Assembly (NCBI GenBank): GCA_964057225.1
Contig: OZ059895.1
Span: forward strand, 12,090,001 to 12,154,000
DNA length: 64,000 bases
Source of the DNA: Auanema rhodensis
Lineage: Eukaryota; Animalia; Nematoda
Reading direction: 5' to 3'
A program made the translations under genes and the position numbers. Below the pieces are notes generated by a model. That model saw nothing but the letters and a program-made list of their open reading frames with translations. It had not been told where the DNA came from and did not search any database. This document shows, one piece after another, positions 2,304-58,653 of this stretch. The stretch's first letter is position 1, and every line of letters starts with the position of its first letter.

Positions 2304-2363
2304 AATTGGAAAAAAAACAATAACGAGGATAAGTATGTAAATCATTGAATATCAGATATTTTC

Positions 2364-2482
2364 GCTTGCGACCATACCACGTTGAAAGTACGCCATCCCG
2401 TCCGATCTGGCAAGTCAAGCAACGTTGGGCCCGGTTAGTACTTGGATCGGAGACGGCTTGGGAATCCCGGGTGCCGTAAGCT
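2364..2482 (+). rRNA. 5S rRNA
   Basis: 119 nt GCTT(G)CGACCATACCACGTTGAAAGTACGCCATCCCGTCCGATCTGG...GTAAGCT followed by a T-run; very similar to nematode 5S. Confidence 0.95.
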
Positions 2483-2893
2483 TTTCAAATTTTTTTAACG
2501 GTCATACCACGTTGAAAGTACGCCATGCAGCTGATTTTCAATTTTATCTCTTCCGTAACAAATGTTTTCAATTTTCCAGCAGTTTTACTTAGATAGCTCA
2601 ACCCAAGGCATTAAAATATCTTCAATCTTATTTCTATATTACAGTTATAAACCAGTAGTTTATGAACCTTCATCTTAACTTTACTGTTTCTATTCATTTC
2701 CTATTGAAACAAACATTGTTTAAACACTATACAACTGTGAAACCTTTTTTAATTTATTGTATTTGGATCTCATAAGATTTGATATCATCGAGGGATTTAG
2801 ATGTTACGTAGAAAATTACATAACTAACATGAAATTTGGAAAAAAAACAATAACGAGGATAAGTATGTAAATCATTGAATATCAGATATTTTC

Positions 2894-3012
2894 GCTTACG
2901 ACCATACCACGTTGAAAGTACGCCATCCCGTCCGATCTGGCAAGTCAAGCAACGTTGGGCCCGGTTAGTACTTGGATCGGAGACGGCTTGGGAATCCCGG
3001 TTGCCGTAAGCT
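2894..3012 (+). rRNA. 5S rRNA
   Basis: Full 119-nt copy. Confidence 0.95.
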
Positions 3013-3422
3013 TTTCAAATTTTTTTAACGATCATGCCACATTGAAAGTACGCCATGCAGCTGATTTTCAATTTTATCTCTTCCGTAACAAATGTTTTTA
3101 ATTTTCCAGCAGTTTTACTTAGATAGCTCAACCCAAGGCATCAAAATATCTTCAATCTTATTTCTATATTACAGTTATAAACCAGTAGTTCATGAACCTT
3201 CATCTTATCTTTACTGTTTCTATCTATTTCCTATTGAAACAAACATTGTTTTAACACTATACAACTGTGAAACCTTTTTTAATTTATTGTATTTGGATCT
3301 CATAAGATTTGATATCATCGAGGGATTTAGATGTAACGTAGAAAATCACATAACTAACATGAAATTGGAAAAAAAACAATAACGAGGATAAGTATGTAAA
3401 TCATTGAATATCAGATATTTCC

Positions 3423-3455
3423 GCTTACGACCATACCACGTTGAAAGTACGCCAT
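3423..3455 (+). pseudogene. 5S 5' stub (33 nt); others at 5755, 7558, 25833, 26762, 55508, 55768, 57121, 57381, 58309
   Basis: 5S nt 1-33 fused directly to spacer GCAGCTG; 130-bp deletion between direct repeats. Confidence 0.9.
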
Positions 3456-3821
3456 GCAGCTGATTTTCAATTTTATCTCTTCCGTAACAAATGTTTTCGA
3501 TTTTCCAGCAGTTTTACTTAGATAGCTCAACCCAAGGCATCAAAATATCTTCAATCTTATTTCTTTATTACAGTTAAAAACCAGTAGTTTATGAACCTTC
3601 ATCTTAACTTTACTGTTTCTATCTATTTCCTATTGAAACAAACATTGTTTTAACACTATACAACTGTGAAACCTTTTTTAATTTTCTGTATTTGGATCTC
3701 ATAAGATTTGATATCATCGAGGGATTTAGATGTAACGTAGAAAATTACATAACTAACATGAAATTGGAAAAAAAACAATAACGAGGATAAATATGTAAAT
3801 CATTGAATATCAGATATTTTC

Positions 3822-3940
3822 GCTTACGACCATACCACGTTGAAAGTACGCCATCTCGTCCGATCTGGCAAGTCAAGCAACGTTGGGCCCGGTTAGTACT
3901 TAGATCGGAGACGGCTTGGGAATCCCGGGTGCCGTAAGCT
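3822..3940 (+). rRNA. 5S rRNA (box C variant)
   Basis: Full copy, TACTTAGATCGG. Confidence 0.93.
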
Positions 3941-4350
3941 TTTCGAATTTTTTTAACGGTCATACCACGTTGAAAGTACGCCATGCAGCTGGTTTTCAAT
4001 TTTATCTCTTCCGTAACAAATGTTTTCAATTTTCCAGCAGTTTTACTTAGATAGCTCAACCCAAGGCATTAAAATATCTTCAATCTTATTTCTATATTAC
4101 AGTTATAAACCAGTAGTTTATGAACCTTCATCTTAACTTTACTGTTTCTATCTATTTCCTATTGAAACAAACGTTGTTTAAACACTATACAACTGTGAAA
4201 CCTTTTTTAATTTATTGTATTTGGAGCTCATAAGATTTGATATCATTGAGGGATTTAGATGTAACGTGGAAAATTACATAACTAAAATGAAATTGGAAAA
4301 AAAACAATAACGAGGATAAGTATGTAAATCATTGAATATCAGATATTTTC

Positions 4351-4469
4351 GCTTACGACCATACCACGTTGAAAGTACGCCATCCCGTCCGATCTGGCAA
4401 GTCAAGCAACGTTGGGCCCGATTAGTACTTAGATCGGAGACGGCTTGGGAATCCCGGGTGCCGTAAGCT
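4351..4469 (+). rRNA. 5S rRNA (box C variant)
   Basis: Full copy. Confidence 0.93.
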
Positions 4470-4880
4470 TTTCGAATTTTTTTAACGATCATACCACGTT
4501 GAAAGTACGCCATGCAGCTGGTTTTCAATTTTATCTCTTCCGTAACAAATGTTTTTAATTCTCCAGCAGTTTTACTTAGATAGCTCAACCCAAGGCATCA
4601 AAATATCTTCAATCTTATTTCTATATTACAGTTATAAACCAGTAGTTTATGAACCTTCATCTTAACTTTATTGTTTCTATCTATTTCCTATTGAAACAAA
4701 CATTGTTTAAACACTATACAACTGTGAAACCTTTTTTAATTTATTGTATTTGGATTTCATAAGATTTGATATCATCGAGGGATTTAGATGTAACGTAGAA
4801 AATTACATAACTAACATGAAATTGGAAAAAAAAACAATAACGAGGATAAGTATGTAAATTATTGAATATCAGATATTTTC

Positions 4881-4999
4881 ACTTACGACCATACCACGTT
4901 GAAAGTACGCCATCCCGTCCGATCTGGCAAGTCAAGCAACGTTGGGCCCGGTTAGTACTTGGATCGGAGACGGCTTGGGAATCCCGGTTGCCGTAAGCT
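4881..4999 (+). rRNA. 5S rRNA
   Basis: Full copy, G1>A. Confidence 0.93.
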
Positions 5000-5409
5000 T
5001 TTCAAATTTTTTTAACGATCATGCCACATTGAAAGTACGCCATGCAGCTGATTTTCAATTTTATCTCTTCCGTAACAAATGTTTTTAATTTTCCAGCAGT
5101 TTTACTTAGATAGCTCAACCCAAGGCATCAAAATATCTTCAATCTTATTTCTATATTACAGTTATAAACCAGTAGTTCATGAACCTTCATCTTATCTTTA
5201 CTGTTTCTATCTATTTCCTATTGAAACAAACATTGTTTTAACACTATACAACTGTGAAACCTTTTTTAATTTATTGTATTTGGAGCTCATAAGATTTGAT
5301 ATCATTGAGGGATTTAGATGTAACGTGGAAAATTACATAACTAAAATGAAATTGGAAAAAAAACAATAACGAGGATAAGTATGTAAATCATTGAATATCA
5401 GATATTTTC

Positions 5410-5528
5410 GCTTACGACCATACCACGTTGAAAGTACGCCATCTCGTCCGATCTGGCAAGTCAAGCAACGTTGGGCCCGGTTAGTACTTAGATCGGAGAC
5501 GGCTTGGGAATCCCGGGTGCCGTAAGCT
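5410..5528 (+). rRNA. 5S rRNA (box C variant)
   Basis: Full copy. Confidence 0.93.
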
Positions 5529-6154
5529 TTTCGAATTTTTTTAACGGTCATACCACGTTGAAAGTACGCCATGCAGCTGGTTTTCAATTTTATCTCTTCC
5601 GTAACAAATGTTAATTTATTGTATTTGGATCTCATAAGATTTGATATCATCGAGGGATTTAGATGTAACGTAGAAAATCACATAACTAACATGAAATTGG
5701 AAAAAAAACAATAACGAGGATAAGTATGTAAATCATTGAATATCAGATATTTCCGCTTACGACCATACCACGTTGAAAGTACGCCATGCAGCTGATTTTC
5801 AATTTTATCTCTTCCGTAACAAATGTTTTCGATTTTCCAGCAGTTTTACTTAGATAGCTCAACCCAAGGCATCAAAATATCTTCAATCTTATTTCTTTAT
5901 TACAGTTAAAAACCAGTAGTTTATGAACCTTCATCTTAACTTTACTGTTTCTATCTATTTCCTATTGAAACAAACATTGTTTTAACACTATACAACTGTG
6001 AAACCTTTTTTAATTTTCTGTATTTGGATCTCATAAGATTTGATATCATCGAGGGATTTAGATGTAACGTAGAAAATTACATAACTAACATGAAATTGGA
6101 AAAAAAAACAATAACGAGGATAAGTATGTAAATTATTGAATATCAGATATTTTC

Positions 6155-6273
6155 ACTTACGACCATACCACGTTGAAAGTACGCCATCCCGTCCGATCTG
6201 GCAAGTCAAGCAACGTTGGGCCCGGTTAGTACTTGGATCGGAGACGGCTTGGGAATCCCGGTTGCCGTAAGCT
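6155..6273 (+). rRNA. 5S rRNA
   Basis: Full copy, G1>A. Confidence 0.93.
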
Positions 6274-6683
6274 TTTCAAATTTTTTTAACGATCATGCCA
6301 CATTGAAAGTACGCCATGCAGCTGATTTTCAATTTTATCTCTTCCGTAACAAATGTTTTTAATTTTCCAGCAGTTTTACTTAGATAGCTCAACCCAAGGC
6401 ATCAAAATATCTTCAATCTTATTTCTATATTACAGTTATAAACCAGTAGTTCATGAACCTTCATCTTATCTTTACTGTTTCTATCTATTTCCTATTGAAA
6501 CAAACATTGTTTTAACACTATACAACTGTGAAACCTTTTTTAATTTATTGTATTTGGAGCTCATAAGATTTGATATCATTGAGGGATTTAGATGTAACGT
6601 GGAAAATTACATAACTAAAATGAAATTGGAAAAAAAACAATAACGAGGATAAGTATGTAAATCATTGAATATCAGATATTTTC

Positions 6684-6802
6684 GCTTACGACCATACCAC
6701 GTTGAAAGTACGCCATCTCGTCCGATCTGGCAAGTCAAGCAACGTTGGGCCCGGTTAGTACTTAGATCGGAGACGGCTTGGGAATCCCGGGTGCCGTAAG
6801 CT
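6684..6802 (+). rRNA. 5S rRNA (box C variant)
   Basis: Full copy. Confidence 0.93.
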
Positions 6803-7212
6803 TTTCGAATTTTTTTAACGGTCATACCACGTTGAAAGTACGCCATGCAGCTGGTTTTCAATTTTATCTCTTCCGTAACAAATGTTTTCAATTTTCCAGC
6901 AGTTTTACTTAGATAGCTCAACCCAAGGCATTAAAATATCTTCAATCTTATTTCTATATTACAGTTATAAACCAGTAGTTTATGAACCTTCATCTTAACT
7001 TTACTGTTTCTATCTATTTCCTATTGAAACAAACGTTGTTTAAACACTATACAACTGTGAAACCTTTTTTAATTTTCTGTATTTGGATCTCATAAGATTT
7101 GATATCATCGAGGGATTTAGATGTAACGTAGAAAATTACATAACTAACATGAAATTGGAAAAAAAACAATAACGAGGATAAATATGTAAATCATTGAATA
7201 TCAGATATTTTC

Positions 7213-7331
7213 GCTTACGACCATACCACGTTGAAAGTACGCCATCTCGTCCGATCTGGCAAGTCAAGCAACGTTGGGCTCGGTTAGTACTTAGATCGGA
7301 GACGGCTTGGGAATCCCGGGTGCCGTAAGCT
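7213..7331 (+). rRNA. 5S rRNA (box C variant)
   Basis: Full copy. Confidence 0.93.
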
Positions 7332-7956
7332 TTTCGAATTTTTTTAACGGTCATACCACGTTGAAAGTACGCCATGCAGCTGGTTTTCAATTTTATCTCT
7401 TCCGTAACAAATGTTAATTTATTGTATTTGGATCTCATAAGATTTGATATCATCGAGGGATTTAGATGTAACGTAGAAAATCACATAACTAACATGAAAT
7501 TGGAAAAAAAACAATAACGAGGATAAGTATGTAAATCATTGAATATCAGATATTTCCGCTTACGACCATACCACGTTGAAAGTACGCCATGCAGCTGATT
7601 TTCAATTTTATCTCTTCCGTAACAAATGTTTTCGATTTTCCAGCAGTTTTACTTAGATAGCTCAACCCAAGGCATCAAAATATCTTCAATCTTATTTCTT
7701 TATTACAGTTAAAAACCAGTAGTTTATGAACCTTCATCTTAACTTCACTGTTTCTATCTATTTCCTATTGAAACAAACATTGTTTTAACACTATACAACT
7801 GTGAAACCTTTTTTAATTTTCTGTATTTGGATCTCATAAGATTTGATATCATCGAGGGATTTAGATGTAACGTAGAAAATTACATAACTAACATGAAATT
7901 GGAAAAAAAACAATAACGAGGATAAATATGTAAATCATTGAATATCAGATATTTTC

Positions 7957-8075
7957 GCTTACGACCATACCACGTTGAAAGTACGCCATCCCGTCCGATC
8001 TGGCAAGTCAAGCAACGTTGGGCCCGGTTAGTACTTAGATCGGAGACGGCTTGGGAATCCCGGGTGCCGTAAGCT
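7957..8075 (+). rRNA. 5S rRNA (box C variant)
   Basis: Full copy. Confidence 0.93.
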
Positions 8076-8485
8076 TTTCGAATTTTTTTAACGGTCATAC
8101 CACGTTGAAAGTACGCCATGCAGCTGGTTTTCAATTTTATCTCTTCCGTAACAAATGTTTTCAATTTTCCAGCAGTTTTACTTAGATAGCTCAACCCAAG
8201 GCATTAAAATATCTTCAATCTTATTTCTATATTACAGTTATAAACCAGTAGTTTATGAACCTTCATCTTAACTTTACTGTTTCTATCTATTTCCTATTGA
8301 AACAAACGTTGTTTAAACACTATACAACTGTGAAACCTTTTTTAATTTATTGTATTTGGAGCTCATAAGATTTGATATCATTGAGGGATTTAGATGTAAC
8401 GTGGAAAATTACATAACTAAAATGAAATTGGAAAAAAAACAATAACGAGTTTAAGTATGTAAATCATTGAATATCAGATATTTTC

Positions 8486-8604
8486 GCTTACGACCATACC
8501 ACGTTGAAAGTACGCCATCCCGTCCGATCTGGCAAGTCAAGCAACGTTGGGCCCGATTAGTACTTAGATCGGAGACGGCTTGGGAATCCCGGGTGCCGTA
8601 AGCT
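8486..8604 (+). rRNA. 5S rRNA (box C variant)
   Basis: Full copy. Confidence 0.93.
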
Positions 8605-9014
8605 TTTCGAATTTTTTTAACGATCATACCACGTTGAAAGTACGCCATGCAGCTGGTTTTCAATTTTATCTCTTCCGTAACAAATGTTTTTAATTCTCCA
8701 GCAGTTTTACTTAGATAGCTCAACCCAAGGCATCAAAATATCTTCAATCTTATTTCTATATTACAGTTATAAACCAGTAGTTTATGAACCTTCATCTTAA
8801 CTTTATTGTTTCTATCTATTTCCTATTGAAACAAACATTGTTTAAACACTATACAACTGTGAAACCTTTTTTAATTTATTGTATTTGGAGCTCATAAGAT
8901 TTGATATCATTGAGGGATTTAGATGTAACGTGGAAAATTACATAACTAAAATGAAATTGGAAAAAAAACAATAACGAGGATAAGTATGTAAATTATTGAA
9001 TATCAGATATTTTC

Positions 9015-9133
9015 ACTTACGACCATACCACGTTGAAAGTACGCCATCCCGTCCGATCTGGCAAGTCAAGCAACGTTGGGCCCGGTTAGTACTTAGATCG
9101 GAGACGGCTTGGGAATCCCGGGTACCGTAAGCT
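9015..9133 (+). rRNA. 5S rRNA (box C variant)
   Basis: Full copy, G1>A. Confidence 0.93.
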
Positions 9134-9542
9134 TTTCGAATTTTTTTAACGATCATACCACGTTGAAAGTACGCCATGCAGCTGGTTTTCAATTTTATCT
9201 CTTCCGTAACAAATGTTTTCAATTTTCCAGCAGTTTTACTTAGATAGCTCAACCCAAGGCATTAAAATATCTTCAATCTTATTTCTATATTACAGTTATA
9301 AACCAGTAGTTTATGAACCTTCATCTTAACTTTACTGTTTCTATCTATTTCCTATTGAAACAAACGTTGTTTAAACACTATACAACTGTGAAACCTTTTT
9401 TAATTTATTGTATTTGGAGCTCATAAGATTTGATATCATTGAGGGATTTAGATGTAACGTGGAAAATTACAAAACTAAAATGAAATCGGAAAAAAAAAAT
9501 AACGAGGATAAGTATGTAAATCATTGAATATCAGATATTTTC

Positions 9543-9661
9543 GTTTACGACCATACCACGTTGAAAGTACGCCATCCCGTCCGATCTGGCAAGTCAAGCA
9601 ACGTTGGGCCCGGTTAGTACTTGGATCGGAGACGGCTTGGGAATCCCGGGTGCCGTAAGCA
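9543..9661 (+). rRNA. 5S rRNA
   Basis: Full copy; first T-run altered. Confidence 0.93.
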
Positions 9662-10071
9662 TTTCAAATTTTTTTAACGATCATGCCACGTTGAAAGTAC
9701 GCCATGCAGCTGATTTTCAATTTTATCTCTTCCGTAACAAATGTTTTTAATTCTCCAGCAGTTTTACTTAGATAGCTCAACCCAAGGCATCAAAATATCT
9801 TCAATCTTATTTCTATATTACAGTTATAAACCAGTAGTTTATGAACCTTAATCTTAACTTTACTGTTTCTATCTATTTCCTATTGAAACAAACATTGTTT
9901 AAACACTATACAACTGTGAAACCTTTTTTAATTTATTGTATTTGGATCTCATAAGATTTGATATCATCGAGGGATTTAGATATTACGTAGAAAATTACAT
10001 AACTAACATGAAATTGGAAAAAAAACAATAACGAGGATAAGTATGTAAATCATTGAATATCAGATATTTTC

Positions 10072-10190
10072 GCTTACGACCATACCACGTTGAAAGTACG
10101 CCATCCCGTCCGATCTGGCAAGTCAAGCAACGTTGGGCCCGGTTAGTACTTGGATCGGAGACGGCTTGGGAATCCCGGGTGCCGTAAGCA
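10072..10190 (+). rRNA. 5S rRNA
   Basis: Full copy; first T-run altered. Confidence 0.94.
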
Positions 10191-10600
10191 TTTCAAATTT
10201 TTTTAACGATCATGCCACGTTGAAAGTACGCCATGCAGCTGATTTTCAATTTTATCTCTTCCGTAGCAAATGTTTTTAATTCTCCAGCAGTTTTACTTAG
10301 ATAGCTCAACCCAAGGCATCAAAATATCTTCAATCTTATTTCTATATTACAGTTATAAACCAGTAGTTTATGAACCTTAATCTTAACTTTACTGTTTCTA
10401 TCTATTTCCTATTGAAACAAACATTGTTTAAACACTATACAACTGTGAAACCTTTTTTAATTTATTGTATTTGGATCTCATAAGATTTGATATCATCGAG
10501 GGATTTAGATATTACGTAGAAAATTACATAACTAACATGAAATTGGAAAAAAAACAATAACGAGGATAAGTATGTAAATCATTGAATATCAGATATTTTC

Positions 10601-10719
10601 GCTTACGACCATACCACGTTGAAAGTACGCCATCCCGTCCGATCTGGCAAGTCAAGCAACGTTGGGCCCGGTTAGTACTTGGATCGGAGACGGCTTGGGA
10701 ATCCCGGGTGCCGTAAGCA
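10601..10719 (+). rRNA. 5S rRNA
   Basis: Full copy; first T-run altered. Confidence 0.94.
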
Positions 10720-11129
10720 TTTCAAATTTTTTTAACGATCATGCCACGTTGAAAGTACGCCATGCAGCTGATTTTCAATTTTATCTCTTCCGTAGCAAAT
10801 GTTTTTAATTCTCCAGCAGTTTTACTTAGATAGCTCAACCCAAGGCATCAAAATATCTTCAATCTTATTTCTATATTACAGTTATAAACCAGTAGTTTAT
10901 GAACCTTAATCTTAACTTTACTGTTTCTATCTATTTCCTATTGAAACAAACATTGTTTAAACACTATACAACTGTGAAACCTTTTTTAATTTATTGTATT
11001 TGGATCTCATAAGATTTGATATCATCGAGGGATTTAGATATTACGTAGAAAATTACATAACTAACATGAAATTGGAAAAAAAACAATAACGAGGATAAGT
11101 ATGTAAATCATTGAATATCAGATATTTTC

Positions 11130-11248
11130 GCTTACGACCATACCACGTTGAAAGTACGCCATCCCGTCCGATCTGGCAAGTCAAGCAACGTTGGGCCCGG
11201 TTAGTACTTGGATCGGAGACGGCTTGGGAATCCCGGGTGCCGTAAGCT
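11130..11248 (+). rRNA. 5S rRNA
   Basis: Full consensus copy. Confidence 0.96.
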
Positions 11249-11657
11249 TTTCAATTTTTTTTAACGATCATACCACGCTGAAAGTATGCCATGCAGCTGA
11301 TTTTCAATTTTATCTCTTCCGTAACAAATGTTTTCAATTTTCTAGCAGTTTTACTTAGATAGCTCAACCCAAGGCATCAAAAAATCTTCAATCTTATTTC
11401 TATATTACAGTTATAAACCAGTAGTTTATGAACCTTAATCTTAACTTTACTGTTTCTATCTATTTCTTATTGAAACAAACGTTGTTTAAACACTATACAA
11501 CTGTGAAACCTTTTTTAATTTATTGTATTTGGAGCTCATAAGATTTGATATCATCGAGGGATTTAGATGTAACGTAGAAAATTACATAACTAACATGAAA
11601 TTGGAAAAAAACAATAACGAGGATAAATATGTAAATCATTGAATATCAGATATTTTT

Positions 11658-11776
11658 GCTTACGACCATACCACGTTGAAAGTACGCCATCCCGTCCGAT
11701 CTGGCAAGTCAAGCAACGTTGGGCCCGGTTAGTACTTGGATCGGAGACGGCTTGGGAATCCCGGGTGCCGTAAGCT
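11658..11776 (+). rRNA. 5S rRNA
   Basis: Full consensus copy. Confidence 0.96.
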
Positions 11777-12186
11777 TTTCAAATTTTTTTAACGATCATG
11801 CCACGTTGAAAGTACGCCATGCAGCTGATTTTCAATTTTATCTCTTCCGTAACAAATGTTTTTAATTCTCCAGCAGTTTTACTTAGATAGCTAAACCCAA
11901 GGCATCAAAATATCTTCAATCTTATTTCTATATTACATTTATAAACCAATAGTTCATGAACCTTCATCTTAACTTTATTGTTTCTATCTATTTCCTATTG
12001 AAACAAACATTGTTTAAACACTATACAACTGTGAAACCTTTTTTAATTTATTGTATTTGGATCTCATAAGATTTGATATCATCGAGGGATTTAGATGTAA
12101 CGTAGAAAATTACATAACTAAAATGAAATTGGAAAAAAAACAATAACGATGATAAGTATGTAAATCATTGAATATCAGATATTTTC

Positions 12187-12305
12187 GCTTACGACTATAC
12201 CACGTTGAAAGTACGCCATCCCGTCCGATCTGGCAAGTCATGCAACGTTGGGCCCGGTTAGTACTTGGATCGGAGACGGCTTGGGAATCCCGGGTGCCGT
12301 AAGCT
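12187..12305 (+). rRNA. 5S rRNA
   Basis: Full copy, 2 substitutions. Confidence 0.94.
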
Positions 12306-12714
12306 TTTCAAATTTTTTTAACGATCATACCACGGTGAAAGTATGCCATGCAGCTGATTTTCAATTTTATCTCTTCCGTAACAAATGTTTTCAATTTTCC
12401 AGCAGTTTTACTTAGATAGCTCAACCCAAGGCATCAAAAAATCTTCAATCTTATTTCTATATTACAGTTATAAACCAGTAGTTTTTGAACCTTAATCTTA
12501 ACTTTACTGTTTCTATCTATTTCTTATTGAAACAAACGTTGTTTAAACACTATACAACTGTGAAACCTTTTTCAATTTATTGTATTTGGAGCTCATAAGA
12601 TTTGATATCATCGAGGGATTTAGATGTAACGTAGAAAATTACATAACTAACATGAAATTGGAAAAAAACAATAACGAGGATAAATATGTAAATCATTGAA
12701 TATCAGATATTTTT

Positions 12715-12833: not shown

Positions 12834-12856
12834 TTTCAAATTTTTTCAACGATCAT

Positions 12857-39360: not shown

Positions 39361-39432
39361 TAACTAACATGAAATTGGAAAAAAAACAATAACGAGGATA
39401 AGTATGTAAATCATTGAATATCAGATATTTTC

Positions 39433-47615: not shown

Positions 47616-48950
47616 TTACAAACTGGTATCAATATATGGAGCACGATTGTTGTCAATTGAAAGAATAGAGTCATATTCTGCATAAACAATAGCATATAAA
47701 CCCTCTTGCGGCGTTTGTTCACCAAATTCTAATTTCAGGGCCACATTACCTTGTCGTATAACATCAAATAACTCGGACGAGTGTACAGTCGGTGAAATAT
47801 CAAATACAAAAAATGTGAACCCAGCTTTATACATTGCTGGTGTAATACCATTGGATGAATCTGTACGACCAAGGCCCAAACCTTCCAACATGTCAATATA
47901 TGCTGTGGCATAGGAAGAACGCCATTCTAAATTATAAGGGCGGGTAGGTATTACCCGATTGTTGAGCGTCAAGTATATATTTTTCAATTCAAACGGTTTA
48001 AAGTTGAATGGCGAATGTTTAAAAGTACCATTATAGGCGTGTGCGCCGACAAGACCTACTACAACACGTTTCGGTGTATGCGACGTGAATAATATGTTAT
48101 TGGGTGAATCCAAACGACCTCCTTCTATGAAATAAGATCGCATTTTCACTGACGTCATGGGGTAGTGTATTCGTTCCTTTACAAGTTTATCTTCTATAGC
48201 CATAGCTAATCCAGCGTTTAGATCAAACTCTTGAATAAGCAAGTGCACATCGTTGATATCTATTTTCAGGTTTGGAAACTCCTCCTTCATTGCAGCATCC
48301 TTGCTTTCATTATTCCATCCAAGTGTGTCAATTAAGAAATTATTACGGTTTGGATATGCAGTTAGCTCCATTTTTGAATAGTTTACAAACAGTCGTTCCT
48401 GATTGAACAAGTCGATACTGATGGGAGCAGCCATCTCACACAATATGCCATTTTTAACAAGCCCTTGTCGCGCTCTAAATCCAGGACTGGCCGCATTATC
48501 TATATATCTATCCGCATAATAGCCTGATATGGCAAGTTTGCTCTCTTTAACATCGTTGCTATACATTAGAATATTCTCAATATATGTTTTGTAGGCATGA
48601 TTTACGGTAGAGTCATACACGCTAACATCACCAATTTTTAAATGATACGAGTGTATCAAACTGGCTGCAAATTGTTGGCATGGTGCAAAAACAAGGTTGT
48701 CTGGTACTGGATCACCGTTTGTGGTTACAATTTTGAATTTTACATTCAACCAACACCTTCTCAGATTAAGAAATGATTTGGAATTTTGGGCTATAACAAA
48801 TTCCCATGGTCCTTGAGGAAGAAAAGTATTTTTCAAAGGAACTTGTACAGTACGAGTGGATTCAACACCTAATGCCGACGCCGGTATGTCACTATAATTA
48901 ATATTAGGTAAAAGGGCTTGTGCTGATTTTGAATCTATCAATTTAGCCAT
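47616..48950 (-). CDS. Maverick major capsid protein (double jelly-roll)
   Basis: 444 aa; GPWEF, PKRVVVGLV, AYNGTFKHSPFNF, GFTFFVFD, VYAEYD typical of polinton MCP. Confidence 0.92.
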   Translation of the reverse strand: MAKLIDSKSAQALLPNINYSDIPASALGVESTRTVQVPLKNTFLPQGPWEFVIAQNSKSFLNLRRCWLNVKFKIVTTNGDPVPDNLVFAPCQQFAASLIHSYHLKIGDVSVYDSTVNHAYKTYIENILMYSNDVKESKLAISGYYADRYIDNAASPGFRARQGLVKNGILCEMAAPISIDLFNQERLFVNYSKMELTAYPNRNNFLIDTLGWNNESKDAAMKEEFPNLKIDINDVHLLIQEFDLNAGLAMAIEDKLVKERIHYPMTSVKMRSYFIEGGRLDSPNNILFTSHTPKRVVVGLVGAHAYNGTFKHSPFNFKPFELKNIYLTLNNRVIPTRPYNLEWRSSYATAYIDMLEGLGLGRTDSSNGITPAMYKAGFTFFVFDISPTVHSSELFDVIRQGNVALKLEFGEQTPQEGLYAIVYAEYDSILSIDNNRAPYIDTSL

Positions 48951-49403
48951 TTAAATACGATACGACCGCTCACGAGTTATGCACAGACGCTTATGAGGTT
49001 TTGTGGTTTTGCGTCGTCGCCGCTTGCCCAAGCCGGTAAGATCTCGTATAGCCTGCCGGCCGGCTGTTTTAAGAGTTTGCTTGATATTATCGCCCTTGAG
49101 CACCCCATCAACAATTTCATTGCTAGTTTTTAGCAACTGGCCACCAAGCGGTGAATTTACAACTGGACTATTGCTTACAGCACTGGATAATGCATTCCTT
49201 CCAGCATTGATGAGATTTTGGGCTATAGGTGATTGAATAATGCGTGGTAAAAACGATGCCAAAGTTGCCAGTATACCACCCAGGCCATGACCCCTCTGCA
49301 TTCCACGTTGAAACATCATTCCACTAAATGGCGCCCCACCCATTTGTTGATTCAAAAGTGTTGTCCATTGAATTGAGTTCAAGTCTAGAAGGAGGTGTGG
49401 CAT
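48951..49403 (-). CDS. Putative Maverick core/DNA-condensing protein
   Basis: QMGGA, QRGHGLGG and LTGLG motifs plus Arg/Lys-rich tail; abuts the MCP start. Confidence 0.75.
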   Translation of the reverse strand: MPHLLLDLNSIQWTTLLNQQMGGAPFSGMMFQRGMQRGHGLGGILATLASFLPRIIQSPIAQNLINAGRNALSSAVSNSPVVNSPLGGQLLKTSNEIVDGVLKGDNIKQTLKTAGRQAIRDLTGLGKRRRRKTTKPHKRLCITRERSYRI

Positions 49404-49453
49404 ATTGAACCGCACGTGCGCAATACAAAAGTTACACTAGATCATTTTACTAA

Positions 49454-49899
49454 ATTTATTCGTCTGAAATAGCGTCACTATTGCGATCTGTCCGCATCAC
49501 TCGAAAACTATTCCTCGGTGTATTTAGCGCCGATACTCTACCCAAAACACGTCGAAAGAACTTTGCACTTGTTGTAAATACTAACACACACGATAAACCG
49601 GGCACACATTGGCAAGTCATCTTTGTACGTAATGATCAAGTTTACTTTTTCTGTAGCTTGGGTTATAATGAATGAACAAGTACATTCGTCATTATCTGGC
49701 CAAATATAAAAATGTAAAAGTTAATACTTGCAAACCACAACGCATAATTGAATACACTTGTGGTGGTTATGCAATATTTGTAATACTAATGTTGTCAGCT
49801 GGTAATACATTTGAAAGCATTTGTTCATTTTTTAAACTATTACAAAACGATGATGTTTTTATTAAAGCGTTTATGCATAAAGTGGTGTGGTGTTCGTAG
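49454..49899 (+). pseudogene. Adenain-like cysteine protease, frameshifted ~49670; start appears to be ATT
   Basis: FLGVFSAD, VVNT...PGTHW, FFCSLG, Q...TCGGY across two frames. Confidence 0.85.
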
Positions 49900-50191
49900 A
49901 CGTTTGTGCCCTTATTGTAGTGAAACTTTTGGAACAAGATTCAATTGTCAGCGTCATATTCGGCGTCTTCATAATAGTAATGGAACGAATGGTAAAGATG
50001 GTGATGGAAATGATACCAGCGAACCCTCTGAAAAAACTGAGGAGTTTGTACAGTCAACCGAACCAAAACGATGCCGCTGCAATAGTAACCGAGAATATTC
50101 ACAACACGAGCCGCGCATCGAACAAAACGGCGCTGAACTACCTTTTAAACCTTCGAAAATCGTAATGTGGTCTTGTATAACTGTTGAATAA
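49850..50191 (+). CDS. Small C2H2 zinc-finger protein
   Basis: CPYCSETFGTRFNCQRHIRRLH; AATAAA at the stop. Confidence 0.6.
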   Translation: MMFLLKRLCIKWCGVRRRLCPYCSETFGTRFNCQRHIRRLHNSNGTNGKDGDGNDTSEPSEKTEEFVQSTEPKRCRCNSNREYSQHEPRIEQNGAELPFKPSKIVMWSCITVE

Positions 50192-50196
50192 AACAT

Positions 50197-51052
50197 TTAT
50201 TTCACATTTTTAACATGTAATGTAACAACTGTAGAACCATAATTAAATTGCATAGGGCGGCCAAATTCATCTAAAATTTCAATACGTATAGTATCGAGTG
50301 TTTGCTTAGTGATTGGTACATAACGAATAGGATTAAATGTTTTGGCAATCATTTTACCAAATTCAGTGGGAGGTGGTACAGGTAAACATGCAAGTAAATT
50401 AGCTTTCACATTACCGAGAATGGAATATTCTACAATATCACAATATATATACATTGTATTAATGTTATTTGAAAAATCAATGGGGCGCCTGGCTATTAAC
50501 GTGTCGTTGATAATTTTATTCTCAAAGCCAAGAAAATATGCGAGAGCATCACCGAGTGTTGCATTCAACAATAGCCGCTTACTTGTTACAAACTCTGCGT
50601 TGTAGTGTTTTGTTAAACCGAAACGTGGCGTCTGCCAGCATTTCCTTGACAAGTTTAGCCTTAGCTTGTCGATTATTATACCACTTTTTCACATCTTCAT
50701 CTTTATCTATCAAACCCTTTATACGTGCTTCTTCCTCAGCTCCAAGAGGTTTAGTGCTGCTAGCAATAAATTGTTCTTTTCCAGCATTGATTCCGCGTAT
50801 TATTTCATCACCATTTGCATAGTTACCTTTGGGTAAGTGCAGAATAAACTTTCTGTTGGAAAAACGTAGTGTATAAGAAAGATTTTCTTGTACATTTAAT
50901 ATCGAACACGGAAAAATTATGTCTGTCAGCCCAATGCAATATCTGTTATTGCGTAGCCTTAATGTTTCAGGTAACCTGGTAAGAAACACTGATGAAGTAT
51001 TACTTTTTTCAGAGTCAACTGATGACGGCAAAGTAATGTAAAAATCATCCAT
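50197..51052 (-). pseudogene. Minor capsid protein (penton), frameshifted ~50600
   Basis: N-terminal FYITLPSS and C-terminal MYIYCDIVE...YVPI...TIRIEILDEFGRP...VTLHVK in two overlapping frames. Confidence 0.85.
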
Positions 51053-51131
51053 CAGAGACCACCACCTGATGCGTGCACACTAGTATAAATGAAATCATTT
51101 GCATTATAGGTACATTTACGAGTGGTTGATT

Positions 51132-51779
51132 ATGGTTTTCAGCTTCAAACTACCCAGTCAGACAACTGTAATAGGGGCAACGCAATGTGGTAAAACTACC
51201 CTTATAAAACGTATATGTGAAAATACTGAAAAGTTTTTCAACGTCCCCATTGATAGAATATTCTGGTTCAGTCAATGTGGAGCATCGTCAGGTGTTCCAT
51301 TAAATGATGAGCGTTTAATAGTTATTCAAGGACCACCTGATCCGGATATAATAAAAGAGCAAAAGGGAGTAAACACCATACTAGTGCTGGATGATTTGAT
51401 GAATTTTTTCTCATCGAATAAAGCGGCTAAAGAATTACTCAACAACATTTTTACAGTGTGGGCACATCACTGGAATTTGGCAGTGTTTAATCTTGTGCAA
51501 GCTGCATTTCAGCTCGACAGGACCAGTCAAATTGATAGTACATATATAATACTGATGAAAAGTCATTCGGATATATTACAAATACGTAATTGTCTGCAAC
51601 AATTATTTGGCCCCCGCTTTAAAAATGCTCTAGAAGCATATGATGATGCAATGTCTACACCCTATAGTCATTTACTGATTGACAACCATCCTTTAACAAA
51701 TGAGAAACAGCGTATACTATCAGATATAACAGCGGAGCACCCTATTGTTTATGTAGCCAGAAATATATTCAGTGTTTAA
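51132..51779 (+). CDS. A32/FtsK-like packaging ATPase
   Basis: Walker A GATQCGKT, Walker B ILVLDD, HHWN...LVQ, PYSHLLID. Confidence 0.93.
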   Translation: MVFSFKLPSQTTVIGATQCGKTTLIKRICENTEKFFNVPIDRIFWFSQCGASSGVPLNDERLIVIQGPPDPDIIKEQKGVNTILVLDDLMNFFSSNKAAKELLNNIFTVWAHHWNLAVFNLVQAAFQLDRTSQIDSTYIILMKSHSDILQIRNCLQQLFGPRFKNALEAYDDAMSTPYSHLLIDNHPLTNEKQRILSDITAEHPIVYVARNIFSV

Positions 51780-51791
51780 TGTGCATGTTCA

Positions 51792-52100
51792 ATGAGTGGT
51801 CGTATTTTGTCAAATTACAACTTTTTATCTTCTTGTGCCAAAACCCCTTGTTCTGTTTCCTCATTTTCTTTTTCACAAATTGAAATTATTGTTGAAATTG
51901 TATTTAATATTGTGAAAAATAATAATTTTCTCTTAACTAACAAGGAATATAAAACCCTTTTGCCCATATCCTCATTATTACGTCAAATAGCTTTGATACG
52001 CACACCCGAAAAGGCTAAAACTTTATTGGCAACGATTTCACACAAACAATTGAAAACAATAGTTTCATGTGGAATTGCTTATTTTGGTTTTAAAAGATGA
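51792..52100 (+). CDS. Small Maverick ORF, 102 aa
   Basis: Tightly packed after the ATPase; EIVFNIVK motif. Confidence 0.6.
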   Translation: MSGRILSNYNFLSSCAKTPCSVSSFSFSQIEIIVEIVFNIVKNNNFLLTNKEYKTLLPISSLLRQIALIRTPEKAKTLLATISHKQLKTIVSCGIAYFGFKR

Positions 52101-52834
52101 AACTCAATCATAAATATCGTCTAATACCTGTTGATGATGAAACGCTGAATATAGACAAGTTTGATGCTGAATTGAAGCTCTTACGAGAGAATAAATCTAT
52201 ACCCGATTATAAAAAGGCTGAACTATACGAAGACTTGATTACCCGTCTCAAAAACTATAGAGAAAGCATAGATGCGCCTATATCAGTACAAGTGGAAAAT
52301 GCTGATCCACCATTATTGCCAGAATACAAGCTGCCACGAAAGTACAACGATCTGTGGGAAAGATTTCCAGAGGTGCGTACAAACAAAAATAACCAACTTG
52401 TGATTAATAATGAGCCCGTACCTAACACAAATATTACAAAAATTTTGGATTTTGTACTGGATAAAACAAAAACGGAACCCAATGGATTTTCAGTATTAGC
52501 CAAATTCTTAGCCAGTAATGGGGTCTCTAGCCCTAATAAGAAGGCAAAAAATGTAGAGCCTGCCGTCAGTAACAAGGATTCAGTTGATCCCGTGCCTACA
52601 TCCACATCGGCTGTCACAGACTTGGATGCTACTATTAATATATTACCTAGAACACCACGTCACCGTAAGGCTGTTATTCGATATTCACCCTCTCCGCGTC
52701 GTACATTCAAATCCAAAGCTATAAATAAAAAGGCAAAACCCGCTGACACTGGTGAATCATATTACACACCTCAGGCGGGAGAAACACAGAATGGCAAAGG
52801 CCGTAAACGATTCTACATTAGATTATGGAAGTAA
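52097..52834 (+). CDS. Maverick ORF, 245 aa, unknown function
   Basis: ATGA overlap with the previous ORF; KYRLIP N-terminus, QNGKG...W C-terminus. Confidence 0.7.
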   Translation: MKLNHKYRLIPVDDETLNIDKFDAELKLLRENKSIPDYKKAELYEDLITRLKNYRESIDAPISVQVENADPPLLPEYKLPRKYNDLWERFPEVRTNKNNQLVINNEPVPNTNITKILDFVLDKTKTEPNGFSVLAKFLASNGVSSPNKKAKNVEPAVSNKDSVDPVPTSTSAVTDLDATINILPRTPRHRKAVIRYSPSPRRTFKSKAINKKAKPADTGESYYTPQAGETQNGKGRKRFYIRLWK

Positions 52835-52905
52835 TGTTTTGGAGAACATTTATTATAATATTAAGCATCCAGCTTATTATACGTCTGCCAAAAATCTATT
52901 ATTGG
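52791..52905 (+). pseudogene. N-terminal remnant of Maverick integrase
   Basis: VLENIYYNIKHPAYYTSAKNL resembles the start of polinton integrases; no DDE core follows. Confidence 0.6.
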
Positions 52906-54084
52906 TGTCGAAGGTACAATATTCTCTACATCAACAAGAGCGGAACGCTTCATGTTTGTAGCTCAATTGGAGGCTTTTCCTAAACAACAACGAACTTTTA
53001 CGTCTAAGGTCCAAGTAGAGTAGAGGAAAGTCCTAGCAGCAGTCTGTTGACGTTGGATCAGATCGTCGACTTGTTGGCAGAGGTGGATCGGCGAAAAGAC
53101 TTGTTGACAGAGCTGGATCGTAGAGTCGACTTGTTGGCGGAGCTGAAATGCAAATTTCGGTCTTAAAAATTTTGCCACCTTTTATACAAACGTTGTTGTA
53201 AAGCTATACCCACTCCGCCTCTTTCACAAAACAGTTGACTGCTGTATGCGGCTTTTTTATTTGTTATATATTACAACAAATATATGCATTTATACATTAA
53301 TTAGCAGTTTGTTGCGCAAACAGCTGCCAAATGCGCTAAAATACACCGATTGGGCCAACAGTTGCCGGATTAACAACCTGTAAACTATCCGCTTATTAAT
53401 TACTTGTTACATCATTCGATTTCGTAAATACAAATATTTAACAATAATTCAACTCATTTGTGACAAGTCCCTATACAATAACAACTGTCATCAAAAATTG
53501 TGGAAGATTACAATAGGATCGTTTAATATTGTATTCATATTCTTATTATAACAGCTGTGGTACACTCTTACTTTTAGGGAACACTAATTCAAAATGTTGG
53601 ATCCTACTGAGGAAACGCAGGATTGTTGCGAAAAACAGACTTGTACACATCCGATTACAAGTACAACATTTCCAGACACTTTGTAAAAAAGAAACTCTTA
53701 CAAAATGTTAACACATGTTCTAATTTTAAATGAAAATTTATTGTTCAATAAATATATTACGAAACATTTATTCTATTCTTGAACATAGTTATGAAATACA
53801 TTAGCTATCAGAACATTTATAAACTATTAGGGCTACAACAACAATTACTTTAAAGTAACATTTTTGATGTTAAAAAGTTTGAAAATATTTGTATATACTC
53901 ATGACCCCTTGGCATAGTAAGTATTCTTTAGCGTTATGGGTACATGTGGTGTACAGCTATTTATCATATTTTTATGAACACAACTTTTGCCATGTGGTAC
54001 ATGTGTAGTGCACCTGTTTTAACGATCTTATCGAATTAACCTTCGATATGTGTTTCATTAAATTTAGTTTAAATATTTAGTACT

Positions 54085-54662
54085 TCTTATCGAATTAACC
54101 TTCGATATGAGTTCCATTGATTAACCCATAAGAGGTACGGTGAACATATTAATTAGCTTTTATATAAATTCAAATTTTATAAATTAAAACAAAAACAATA
54201 TATATTAAAAAGTTTATTCAAATGTATATATATTAAAAATACATTTAAAAGGAGATAATTTTAATAATATTTTAAAAATATATAAAATACATTTAAAAAG
54301 AAATAATTGAATAGTAATATTTAAAACATATATAAATATTAAAAATACATTTAAAAAGAAATAATTTTGAAAATATTTACAAATACAACTAACAAATATA
54401 TAAATAATAAAAATTCATTTAAAAATAGATTAAAAAATAATTTTAAAAAAGCTTTTAAAGAAAAAATCATGCATTTTGATTCATGCGCAGGCTCGAGAGC
54501 CTGCCTCGGGAGGAAAAGTATATTTTTGACAGCTGACGCCGAAAATATGATTTTGACAGCTGACGCCCCCAAAAGTATGATTTTAGCAGCTGACGCCCTC
54601 AAAGGTATGTTTTTAGCAACTGTTTGGGGGCGTGGTTAGTAAATTCGGCATGGCTCTCTACT
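54085..54662 (-). repeat. Right TIR
   Basis: Inverted copy of 39548-40126; 53900-54056 also inverts ~41057-41217. Confidence 0.93.
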
Positions 54663-54978
54663 GCCGTAAGCTTTTCAAATTTTTTTAACGATCATACCAC
54701 GTTGAAAGTACGCCATGCAGCTGATTTTCAATTTTATCTCTTCCGTAACAAATGTTTTCAATTTTCCAGCAGTTTTACTTAGATAGCTATTGAAACAAAC
54801 GTTGTTTAAACACTATACAACTGTGAAACCTTTTTTAATTTATTGTATTTGGATCTCATAAGATTTGATATCATCGAGGGATTTAGATGTAACGTAGAAA
54901 AATACATAACTAACATGAAATTGGAAAAAAAACAATAACGAGGATAAGTATGTAAATCATTGAATATCAGATATTTTC

Positions 54979-55097
54979 GCTTACGACCATACCACGTTGA
55001 AAGTACGCCATCCCGTCCGATCTGGCAAGTCAAGCAACGTTGAGCCCGGTTAGTACTTGGATCGGAGACGGCTTGGGAATCCCGGGTGCCGTAAGCT
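54979..55097 (+). rRNA. 5S rRNA
   Basis: Full copy, GTTGAGCCC variant. Confidence 0.94.
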
Positions 55098-56166
55098 TTT
55101 CAAATTTTTTTAACGATCATACCACGTTGAAAGTACGCCATGCAGCTGATTTTCAATTTTATCTCTTCCGTAACAAATGTTTTCAATTTTCCAGCAGTTT
55201 TACTTAGATAGCTCAACCCAAGGCATTAAAATATCTTCAATCTTATTTCTATATTACAGTTATAAACCAGTAGTTTATGAACCTTCATCTTAACTTTACT
55301 GTTTCTATCTATTTCCTATTGAAACAAACATTGTTTAAACACTATACAACTGTGAAACCTTTTTTAATTTATTGTATTTGGAGCTCATAAGATTTGATAT
55401 CATCGAGGGATTTAGGTGTTACGTAGAAAATTACATAACTAACATGAAATTGGAAAAAAAACAATAACGAGGATAAGTATGTAAATCATTGAATATCAGA
55501 TATTTCCGCTTACGACCATACCACGTTGAAAGTACGCCATGCAGCTGATTTTCAATTTTATCTCTTCCGTAACAAATGTTTTCAATTTTCCAGCAGTTTT
55601 ACTTAGATAGCTCAACCCAAGGCATCAAAATATCTTCAATCTTATTTCTTTATTACAGTTATTACAGGGATTTAGATGTAACGTAGAAAATTACATAACT
55701 AACATGAAATTGGAAAAAAAACAATAACGAGGATAAGTATGTAAATCATTGAATATCAGATATTTCCGCTTACGACCATACCACGTTGAAAGTACGCCAT
55801 GCAGCTGATTTTCAATTTTATCTCTTCCGTAACAAATGTTTTCAATTTTCCAGCAGTTTTACTTAGATAGCTCAACCCAAGGCATCAAAATATCTTCAAT
55901 CTTATTTCTTTATTACAGTTATAAACCAGTAGTTTATGAACCTTCATCTTAACTTTACCGTTTTTATCTATTTCCTATTGAAACAAACATTGTTTAAACA
56001 CTATACAACTGTGAAACCTTTTTTAATTTATTGTATTTGGATCTCATAAGATTTGATATCATCGAGGGATTTAGATGTAACGTAGAAAAATACATAACTA
56101 ACATGAAATTGGAAAAAAAACAATAACGAGGATAAGTATGTAAATCATTGAATATCAGATATTTTC

Positions 56167-56285
56167 GCTTACGACCATACCACGTTGAAAGTACGCCATC
56201 CCGTCCGATCTGGCAAGTCAAGCAACGTTGAGCCCGGTTAGTACTTGGATCGGAGACGGCTTGGGAATCCCGGGTGCCGTAAGCT
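56167..56285 (+). rRNA. 5S rRNA
   Basis: Full copy. Confidence 0.94.
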
Positions 56286-56591
56286 TTTCAAATTTTTTTA
56301 ACGATCATACCACGTTGAAAGTACGCCATGCAGCTGATTTTCAATTTTATCTCTTCCGTAACAAATGTTTTCAATTTTCCAGCAGTTTTACTTAGATAGC
56401 TATTGAAACAAACGTTGTTTAAACACTATACAACTGTGAAACCTTTTTTAATTTATTGTATTTGGATCTCATAAGATTTGATATCATCGAGGGATTTAGA
56501 TGTAACGTAGAAAAATACATAACTAACATGAAATTGGAAAAAAAACAATAACGAGGATAAGTATGTAAATCATTGAATATCAGATATTTTC

Positions 56592-56710
56592 GCTTACGAC
56601 CATACCACGTTGAAAGTACGCCATCCCGTCCGATCTGGCAAGTCAAGCAACGTTGAGCCCGGTTAGTACTTGGATCGGAGACGGCTTGGGAATCCCGGGT
56701 GCCGTAAGCT
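56592..56710 (+). rRNA. 5S rRNA
   Basis: Full copy. Confidence 0.94.
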
Positions 56711-57779
56711 TTTCAAATTTTTTTAACGATCATACCACGTTGAAAGTACGCCATGCAGCTGATTTTCAATTTTATCTCTTCCGTAACAAATGTTTTCAAT
56801 TTTCCAGCAGTTTTACTTAGATAGCTCAACCCAAGGCATTAAAATATCTTCAATCTTATTTCTATATTACAGTTATAAACCAGTAGTTTATGAACCTTCA
56901 TCTTAACTTTACTGTTTCTATCTATTTCCTATTGAAACAAACATTGTTTAAACACTATACAACTGTGAAACCTTTTTTAATTTATTGTATTTGGAGCTCA
57001 TAAGATTTGATATCATCGAGGGATTTAGGTGTTACGTAGAAAATTACATAACTAACATGAAATTGGAAAAAAAACAATAACGAGGATAAGTATGTAAATC
57101 ATTGAATATCAGATATTTTCGCTTACGACCATACCACGTTGAAAGTACGCCATGCAGCTGATTTTCAATTTTATCTCTTCCGTAACAAATGTTTTCAATT
57201 TTCCAGCAGTTTTACTTAGATAGCTCAACCCAAGGCATCAAAATATCTTCAATCTTATTTCTTTATTACAGTTATTACAGGGATTTAGATGTAACGTAGA
57301 AAATTACATAACTAACATGAAATTGGAAAAAAAACAATAACGAGGATAAGTATGTAAATCATTGAATATCAGATATTTCCGCTTACGACCATACCACGTT
57401 GAAAGTACGCCATGCAGCTGATTTTCAATTTTATCTCTTCCGTAACAAATGTTTTCAATTTTCCAGCAGTTTTACTTAGATAGCTCAACCCAAGGCATCA
57501 AAATATCTTCAATCTTATTTCTTTATTACAGTTATAAACCAGTAGTTTATGAACCTTCATCTTAACTTTACCGTTTTTATCTATTTCCTATTGAAACAAA
57601 CATTGTTTAAACACTATACAACTGTGAAACCTTTTTTAATTTATTGTATTTGGATCTCATAAGATTTGATATCATCGAGGGATTTAGATGTAACGTAGAA
57701 AAATACATAACTAACATGAAATTGGAAAAAAAACAATAACGAGGATAAGTATGTAAATCATTGAATATCAGATATTTTC

Positions 57780-57898
57780 GCTTACGACCATACCACGTTG
57801 AAAGTACGCCATCCCGTCTGATCTGGCAAGTCAAGCAACGTTGAGCCCGGTTAGTACTTGGATCGGAGACGGCTTGGGAATCCCGGGTGCCGTAAGCT
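57780..57898 (+). rRNA. 5S rRNA
   Basis: Full copy. Confidence 0.93.
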
Positions 57899-58653
57899 TT
57901 TCAAATTTTTTTAACGATCATACCACGTTGAAAGTACGCCATGCAGCTGATTTTCAATTTTATCTCTTCCGTAACAAATGTTTTCAATTTTCCAGCAGTT
58001 TTACTTAGATAGCTCAACCCAAGGCATCAAAAAATCTTCAATCTTATTACTATATTACAGTTATAAACCAGTAGTTTATGAACCTTAATCTTAACTTTAC
58101 TGTTTCTATCTATTTCCTATTAAAACAAACGTTGTTTAAACAATATACAACTGTGAAACCTTTTTTAATTTATTGTATTTGGAGCTCATAAGATTTGATA
58201 TCATCGAGGGATTTAGATGTTACGTAGAAAATTACATAACTAACATGAAATTGGAAAAAAAACAATAACGAGGATAAGTATGTAAATCATTGAATATCAG
58301 ATATTTCCGCTTACGACCATACCACGTTGAAAGTACGCCATGCAGCTGATTTTCAATTTTATCTCTTCCGTAACAAATGTTTTCAATTTTCCAGCAGTTT
58401 TACTCAGATAGCTCAACCCAAGGCATCAAAATATCTTCAATCTTATTTCTTTATTACAGTTAAAAACCAGTAGTTTATGAACCTTCATCTTAACTTCACT
58501 GTTTCTATCTATTTCCTATTAAAACAAACGTTGTTTAAACACTATACAACTGTGAAACCTTTTTTAATTTATTGTATTTGGAGCTCAGAAGATTCAATAT
58601 CATCGAGGGATTTAGATGTAACGTGGAAAATTACATAACTAACATGAAATTGG

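Follow-up and report, generated by a model that had tools for sequence, protein, structure and literature searches.

Three classes of virus-like element inserted in and beside the 5S rRNA genes of a nematode array, by tolerance or by targeting

The 64,000-nucleotide stretch of Auanema rhodensis DNA described here (contig OZ059895.1, positions 12,090,001 to 12,154,000; the window) is a tandem array of 5S ribosomal RNA genes (5S rDNA) interrupted by virus-like elements of three classes. These are two Ty3/gypsy elements (Gypsy A and Gypsy B), a Maverick/Polinton and, at the window ends, two partial BEL/Pao elements (BEL-L and BEL-R). The insertions occurred in place, as a target-site duplication (TSD) flanks each internal element and one continuous 5S unit is split by it. 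The reading that we favour, with middling confidence, is that no dedicated RNA polymerase III (Pol III) tether was involved, and that survival in a tolerated, redundant array, together with the dynamics of the array itself, explains the insertions. They may have been aimed or merely tolerated, and Pol III targeting is a serious rival, if a tentative one.

BEL/Pao, gypsy and Maverick elements all employ retroviral-type integrases. Under the favoured reading, the array would have received four independent insertions (BEL/Pao, two gypsy and Maverick), or five if BEL struck twice. A redundant array may be one of the few sites in a compact genome that tolerates inserts of 12-15 kb, and the copies that land there would survive and hence be seen. 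The positions near genes could be chance, or could reflect a general preference of the integrases for the accessible DNA that surrounds Pol III genes when these are bound. Most simply, the second BEL would be a copy that arose by duplication of an array segment. This reading is favoured because the sites lie at no shared offset, the statistical tests are marginal, the array appears weakly constrained and segment duplication is demonstrated. The four sites lie at -60/-55, at -72/-69, inside the gene and at +20/+23, with no distance in common. A similar survivorship caveat has been raised for the Starships inserted in fungal 5S genes (PMC11162782).

The TSD of Gypsy A, TCAT, corresponds to positions 139-142 of the 5S unit, which is +20 to +23 after the gene end and 5-8 bp beyond the T-run. 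The final gene of the preceding block (12715-12833) stands 23 bp ahead of the element. Both halves of the interrupted unit best match one neighbouring unit (99.3% and 98.7%), and thus the element inserted in place. The TSD of Gypsy B, TAAC, is unit 458-461, or -72 to -69 from the gene at 39433; it can be read as 3-7 bp, and 4 bp was adopted after Gypsy A. The TSD of the Maverick, GCCGTA, is nt 110-115 of the 5S sequence, meaning that this insertion is within the gene, and its 6 bp fall in the range of 5-8 bp described for Maverick/Polinton elements (PMC10748475). The interrupted gene copy (39433-39551) is still scored by Rfam as full length (98 bits), and the first four bases of the Maverick resemble the 5S 3′ end.

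The BEL junctions complement each other. At the left edge AATTGG follows the end of BEL-L (2302), and the array picks up at unit 470, whereas at the right edge AATTGG precedes BEL-R, which begins at 58654 directly after unit 475; the orientation is the same at both. The unit to the left of BEL-R is gene-less and the nearest visible 5S gene is 755 bp away, so that the -60/-55 position of this fragment is read from unit coordinates, because its own 5S gene lies beyond the window. BEL-L and BEL-R overlap in the long terminal repeat (LTR) alone. The pair is explained equally well by a single old insertion that was later duplicated along with part of the array and by two separate hits at the same hexamer, and the safe count of independent insertions is four.

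A first-pass annotation had placed the junctions and TSDs of all of these elements at the same positions, and its estimate of a spacer of about 410 bp agrees with tiling by a 529-bp unit. It had counted five insertions, each near or inside a 5S gene, with the upstream ones all antisense to it. The insertions and their three classes are real, but the BEL pair may be one event, leaving a total of four or five. Proximity holds for BEL-L, Gypsy A, Gypsy B and the Maverick, but is deduced for BEL-R, whose gene is outside the window. BEL-L, Gypsy B and BEL-R do code on the minus strand (Gypsy A codes on the plus strand), although they amount to only two independent upstream events.

The clustering near genes is weak and marginal, with P values of about 0.01-0.1, and all thresholds used for it were picked after the data were seen. 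In the real array, 41.5% of bases are inside a gene or within 75 bp of one. The probability that all sites fall in this zone is 0.012 for five insertions and 0.03 for four, and a mean-distance test gives 0.04 and 0.05, respectively. In an ideal array of full units, the corresponding ranges are 0.03-0.11 and 0.06-0.11.

The 529-bp unit consists of a 119-bp 5S gene and a 410-bp spacer, and accounts for all non-element bases of the window bar 24 in a BLAST tiling. The array makes up 17.4 kb, and the five element pieces 46.6 kb (73%). Rfam recognises 27 5S genes over the whole window, every one on the plus strand. Another ten units, about 399 bp long, lack the gene, and two of them have an additional internal deletion. 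The gene-less units arose by recombination of 5S nt 5-33 with a 29-bp copy of the same sequence just past the terminator (unit 135-163), the copy into which Gypsy A is inserted. Further units carry internal deletions that recur in higher-order repeats of 929, 1613 and about 1800 bp. No tRNA gene was found in the window, nor a spliced-leader or other known RNA gene in the 5S spacer, whereas Caenorhabditis 5S units have been described with a spliced-leader gene (PMC8961926). The array is of the rhabditid-nematode type. Two further possibilities were considered and rejected: 5S sequence captured by the elements, as no unit-like sequence occurs within any of them, and solo LTRs concealed in the array, as the tiling leaves just those 24 bases unaccounted for.

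Seventeen distinct sequences occur among the 27 genes. Diversity is 2.1% in the genes and 3.0% in the spacers, and because these values are nearly equal, the array looks poorly homogenised and under weak constraint. Within blocks 1, 2 and 3, diversity is 3.0%, 0.19% and 1.3%, respectively. Such unequal values are the expectation if large inserts are barriers to unequal exchange, and the inserts now split the array into three separately evolving blocks. Block 3 is arranged as a 1613-bp higher-order repeat, of which the copy cut by the Maverick (39433-39547 plus 54663-56166, the pieces compared apart) differs from the next copy (56167-57779) at one position in 1618 bp. The higher-order repeats, two copies of which are near-identical, demonstrate at the level of sequence that array segments do get duplicated. 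The features are listed in Table 1.

Table 1. Coordinates of array blocks, elements and coding regions in the window
Feature	Position	Strand	Details
BEL-L, 5′ part of BEL/Pao element	1-2302	-	5′ LTR 1909-2302; DUF1759 gag
5S rDNA block 1	2303-12856	+	19 gene-bearing and 3 gene-less units (Rfam, BLAST tiling)
Gypsy A, Ty3/gypsy, 12,055 bp	12857-24911	+	LTRs 12857-13222 and 24546-24911; TSD TCAT 12853-12856 and 24912-24915
Gypsy A coding region, broken	15141-23841	+	gag, fusion glycoprotein, protease (PR), reverse transcriptase (RT), RNase H, integrase (IN); Pfam on open pieces
5S rDNA block 2	24912-27621	+	3 gene-bearing and 2 gene-less units; 929-bp higher-order repeat
Gypsy B, Ty3/gypsy, 11,739 bp	27622-39360	-	LTRs identical; TSD TAAC 27618-27621 and 39361-39364
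Gypsy B single open reading frame, 2947 codons	29043-37886	-	gag, gB-like/Monjiviricetes fusion domain, PR, RT, RNase H, IN
Array stretch, Gypsy B to Maverick	39361-39547	+	187 bp: 72 bp of spacer and 5S nt 1-115 (39433-39547)
Maverick/Polinton, 15,115 bp	39548-54662		ends AG..CT; TSD GCCGTA 39542-39547 and 54663-54668
Maverick protein-primed DNA polymerase B (pPolB), broken	44542-46647	+	Pfam DNA_pol_B_2
Maverick major capsid protein, 444 codons open	47616-48950	-	double jelly-roll predicted fold
Maverick P-loop NTPase candidate (packaging ATPase?)	51099-51779	+	sub-threshold AAA/ATPase Pfam matches; weak
5S rDNA block 3	54663-58653	+	remainder of cut 5S unit, followed by 4 units with a gene and 5 without
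BEL-R, 3′ part of BEL/Pao element	58654-64000	-	3′ LTR 58654-59029
BEL-R coding region (3′ part of pol to env), broken	59060-64000	-	five open pieces, four frame changes
BEL-R env piece, 484 codons open	59869-61323	-	phlebovirus Gc-like class II fusion protein; Phlebovirus_G2 (E 1.4e-41) and Phlebo_G2_C
Gene-less units	3423-3821, 5755-6154, 7558-7956, 25833-26231, 26762-27160, 55508-56166, 57121-57779, 58309-58653		BLAST tiling

Several observations weigh against tolerance as the explanation. Slow accumulation would have had little time in the case of three events that look young: the two LTRs of Gypsy B are identical and its frame of 2947 codons is open, the LTRs of Gypsy A differ at 2 of 366 positions, and the Maverick has the same flanks as the empty paralogous repeat. 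The density is high, with 73% of the window being element DNA of three classes, and the orientation is consistent, as the 5′ LTR faces the adjoining gene in each of the three LTR elements for which one is visible (BEL-L, Gypsy B and Gypsy A; P 0.125). In addition, BEL is found twice at one hexamer, with LTRs at least 5.7% apart and yet a BEL-L gag open for 566 codons, a combination that sits uneasily with a single old, decaying insertion. The youth, the density and the repeated hexamer also speak for the rival in which integration is directed at 5S genes bound by TFIIIA/B/C, or at their nucleosome pattern, with an offset particular to each family and the 5′ end facing the gene. This possibility is a tentative one. 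It stays serious because young events, high density and consistent orientation are joined by a geometry like that of the Dictyostelium elements TRE5, TRE3 and Skipper-2: insertion is antisense upstream and sense downstream, as in TRE5 and TRE3, and Gypsy A lies 5-8 bp past the T-run, where Skipper-2 goes 8-23 bp downstream of tRNA genes (PMC5911963). Every site is inside a gene or at most 76 bp from one, those of BEL and Gypsy B are 9-17 bp apart (-72 to -55) and both antisense, and a single gene is flanked by Gypsy B and the Maverick, with 187 bp between them. Set against this are the one event per family (BEL excepted), P values of just 0.03-0.1 from post hoc tests, and a window that has no tRNA gene to speak for generality. 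Literature searches gave no Pol III association for the relatives in Caenorhabditis, Diploscapter and Oesophagostomum. The integrase core of Gypsy B is not followed by any recognised targeting domain: the 376 residues past it (29046-30173, minus strand) are without a Pfam domain, and the sole match, of the first 120 of them to Ty3 Gag-Pol in the intasome entry 7q5b (E 2e-4), is general Ty3 homology. The first-pass annotation had suggested Pol III-guided or open-chromatin targeting. The descriptive half of that suggestion stands, but the mechanism is not established by four safe events at sites that vary by family, with P of about 0.03-0.1; the accumulation that it offered as an alternative agrees with the weakly constrained look of the array.

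A narrower proposal, which we likewise hold to be possible rather than probable, is that BEL is site-specific for the 5S spacer, BEL-L and BEL-R being independent hits at AATTGG, which lies 55-60 bp ahead of the 5S gene. If a second insertion fell at random in the unit, it would share both hexamer and orientation by chance in about 0.5% of cases. The LTRs diverge by 5.7% over the 140 bp that align best and by more elsewhere, and the open gag of BEL-L beside the broken pol of BEL-R hints at unequal ages. The two junctions are nonetheless the exact complementary halves that a single insertion predicts, in an array that demonstrably duplicates segments, and the fragments share an LTR alone, with the LTR partner, the age and the second junction of each out of view. 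Joining the two ideas, nematode env-bearing LTR elements, perhaps with Mavericks, would target 5S genes occupied by Pol III, each family at its own offset and with the 5′ end gene-ward, and BEL would be truly site-specific; this combined version is possible but rather improbable. An assembly artefact, in which collapsed or mis-joined repeats falsely place the elements in the array, is very improbable. Arrays of rDNA are difficult to assemble and the window ends do resemble the two ends of one element, but each of the three internal elements is joined to the array at both ends, between TSDs that match and with flanks that together make up one continuous unit, and the unit variants make orderly higher-order repeats. 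Tolerance of insertions in a redundant array is thus retained as the favoured reading.

Gypsy A and Gypsy B have the features of Ty3/gypsy elements (Metaviridae), namely LTRs, a short TSD and the order PR-RT-RNase H-IN. In both, a herpesvirus gB-like fusion domain sits between gag and protease of one polyprotein. The coding frame of Gypsy B is open from end to end. Gypsy A shares this plan at 37% amino-acid identity and, when compared with Gypsy B by tblastn (which yields counts only), contains five in-frame stops and one frame change. Its 366-bp LTRs nevertheless have just two mismatches (about 0.5%), and it was probably a defective copy that inserted. The usual ends of LTRs are TG..CA. Read in their own orientation, the LTRs here end in CG..CG in Gypsy A (12857-12861, 24907-24911) and TG..CG in Gypsy B (27622-27627, 39355-39360). 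One 13-mer resembling a primer-binding site lies beside the 5′ LTR in both elements. The same set of domains is found, at no more than 48% identity, in proteins of Caenorhabditis species, Diploscapter pachys and Oesophagostomum, and these relatives support, by sequence, a rhabditid nematode host.

The BEL fragments likewise have the features of their family, BEL/Pao (Belpaoviridae): a Pao-type peptidase, a DUF1759 gag, the DUF5641 integrase tail and LTRs, with the RT region outside the window. The DUF1759 match is in BEL-L (E 2.8e-16), in a gag open for at least 566 codons (3-1700) that continues past the window edge. BEL-R contains the Pao peptidase (Peptidase_A17), an integrase zinc finger, DUF5641 and a phlebovirus Gc-like Env; the integrase core was not recovered. 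A search with the Env gave no relative in the length range searched, and a count of breaks by means of the chimeric relative P0020 failed, as the match was too small. The LTRs of the two fragments belong to one family and are 5.7% apart where they align best (140 bp), with far greater divergence around a (GA)n tract. This microsatellite (2150-2260, 58900-58990) is long and unequal in length between the copies. BEL is taken as the oldest of the insertions.

The Maverick is bounded by terminal inverted repeats (TIRs), of which the left (approximately 39548-41223) is enlarged by a 386-bp tandem duplication and the right covers 53892-54662. The arms 39548-40138 and 54073-54662 are complementary at 90-96%, with more matching up to 41223 and 53892. 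Twelve copies of a motif of about 30 nt occur in the left TIR (40086-41520), and an AT-rich 167-bp tandem array follows it (42318-43047). The pPolB gene is represented by two open pieces that match DNA_pol_B_2 (E 6.8e-22 and 5.2e-17). They share one frame and hold successive parts of the model, with about 0.4 kb of extra sequence between them, while the final third of the Pfam model was not found in the element. The 444-residue protein is identified as the double jelly-roll major capsid protein by its predicted structure (predicted local distance difference test, pLDDT, 78.7; predicted template modelling score, pTM, 0.80), for which Foldseek returned Sputnik (3j26, E 2e-16), PBCV-1 and mavirus (6g45); homologues of the protein were also found. 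A Pfam scan of 20 open frames, with shorter frames outside it, gave no rve match for an integrase, and tblastn with the integrase of Gypsy B yielded nothing usable in the element; the integrase gene appears to have been lost or to have decayed. Neither integrase, protease nor fusogen was recognised by Pfam when 17 further open frames were included. Sequence searches of the PDB with three unassigned open reading frames returned noise only. Two frames on the plus strand, 43233-44348 (371 codons) and 52097-52834 (245 codons), have no family, PDB or fold match, and may encode cargo or minor virion proteins.

Only one of the two near-identical repeat copies carries the Maverick, and a single difference in 1618 bp separates that copy from the empty one. 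The sequence suggests either that the element arrived very recently or that its flanks were converted. It probably moved as a defective copy, because, for all its recent-looking flanks, the two TIRs match at only 90-96% and the polymerase gene is broken.

The locus provides junctions at nucleotide resolution for three virus-like classes that are unrelated to one another, all in one nematode-type array and with the Maverick lying within a 5S gene, and reduces the choice between targeting and a safe haven to a simple mapping question on the source genome. If targeting is true, these would be the first LTR retroelements of an animal known to target Pol III genes. If the array merely tolerates them, it would still be a clear case of large inserts dividing an rDNA array into separately evolving blocks. 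Literature searches found no link of nematodes or Mavericks to 5S genes. A review of Pol III-targeted retroelements covers fungal and amoebal cases only, and such targeting in yeasts and social amoebae has been read as a way of living in compact genomes (PMC5911963). Animal elements of 5S spacers are given from fish only in a review of rDNA transposons, the text of which reports no insertion within a 5S gene, while its table has zebrafish Mutsu inserting into 5S (PMC10946416).

Each element resembles kinds already described. The closest to the BEL fragments is Atlas virus/Cer13, a nematode member of the Belpaoviridae with a phlebovirus-like Env. Atlas virus has one open Gag-Pol-Env frame and identical LTRs (PMC9094657), whereas BEL-R has four frame changes and both BELs are cut by the window ends. 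Env-bearing gypsy elements of the Gypsy A/B kind are also known (PMC13524379). The domain set is shared by nematode gypsy elements that have captured a gB-like or mononegavirus-like glycoprotein, with an identity of 45-48% for the Caenorhabditis and Diploscapter proteins. At no more than 48% identity to relatives, Gypsy A and Gypsy B are new families, and a location in a 5S array is undescribed for those relatives in the literature searched. Nematode Mavericks/Polintons have the TIRs, 6-bp TSD, pPolB and double jelly-roll capsid protein in common with the element described here, but in the latter pPolB is broken and integrase, protease and fusogen are unrecognised. Two nematode Maverick papers, PMC10748475 among them, do not mention rDNA as an insertion site.

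As regards the sites of insertion, Ty3 and Tj1 of yeasts have the superfamily order PR-RT-RNase H-IN in common with Gypsy A/B, and Tj1 likewise targets a 5S gene. They insert 1-10 bp from the transcription start (PMC5911963), as opposed to the -72/-69 and +20/+23 of the gypsy elements here, which also differ in having an animal host and a fusion glycoprotein, and for which a Pol III tether is hypothetical. The Dictyostelium elements, with which DGLT-A is grouped, are closer in geometry. TRE5 inserts 40-54 bp upstream in opposite orientation, at 5S genes too, an offset of tens of bp as seen here; TRE3 inserts downstream in the same orientation, like Gypsy A (PMC5911963). The TRE elements are, however, non-LTR elements, and their preference is based on many independent copies compared with one event per family here. 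Site-specific rDNA elements (R1/R2, Mutsu, Dada and the Starship types) occupy one nucleotide position across independent units; the two BEL junctions lie at one hexamer, as complementary halves that may descend from one event. The fungal Starships differ in using tyrosine recombinases, in their hosts and in having targeting backed by dozens of insertions. They are nevertheless large elements that sit within the 5S coding sequence, at several different target sites, and for which the same debate between targeting and a safe haven is under way (PMC11162782).

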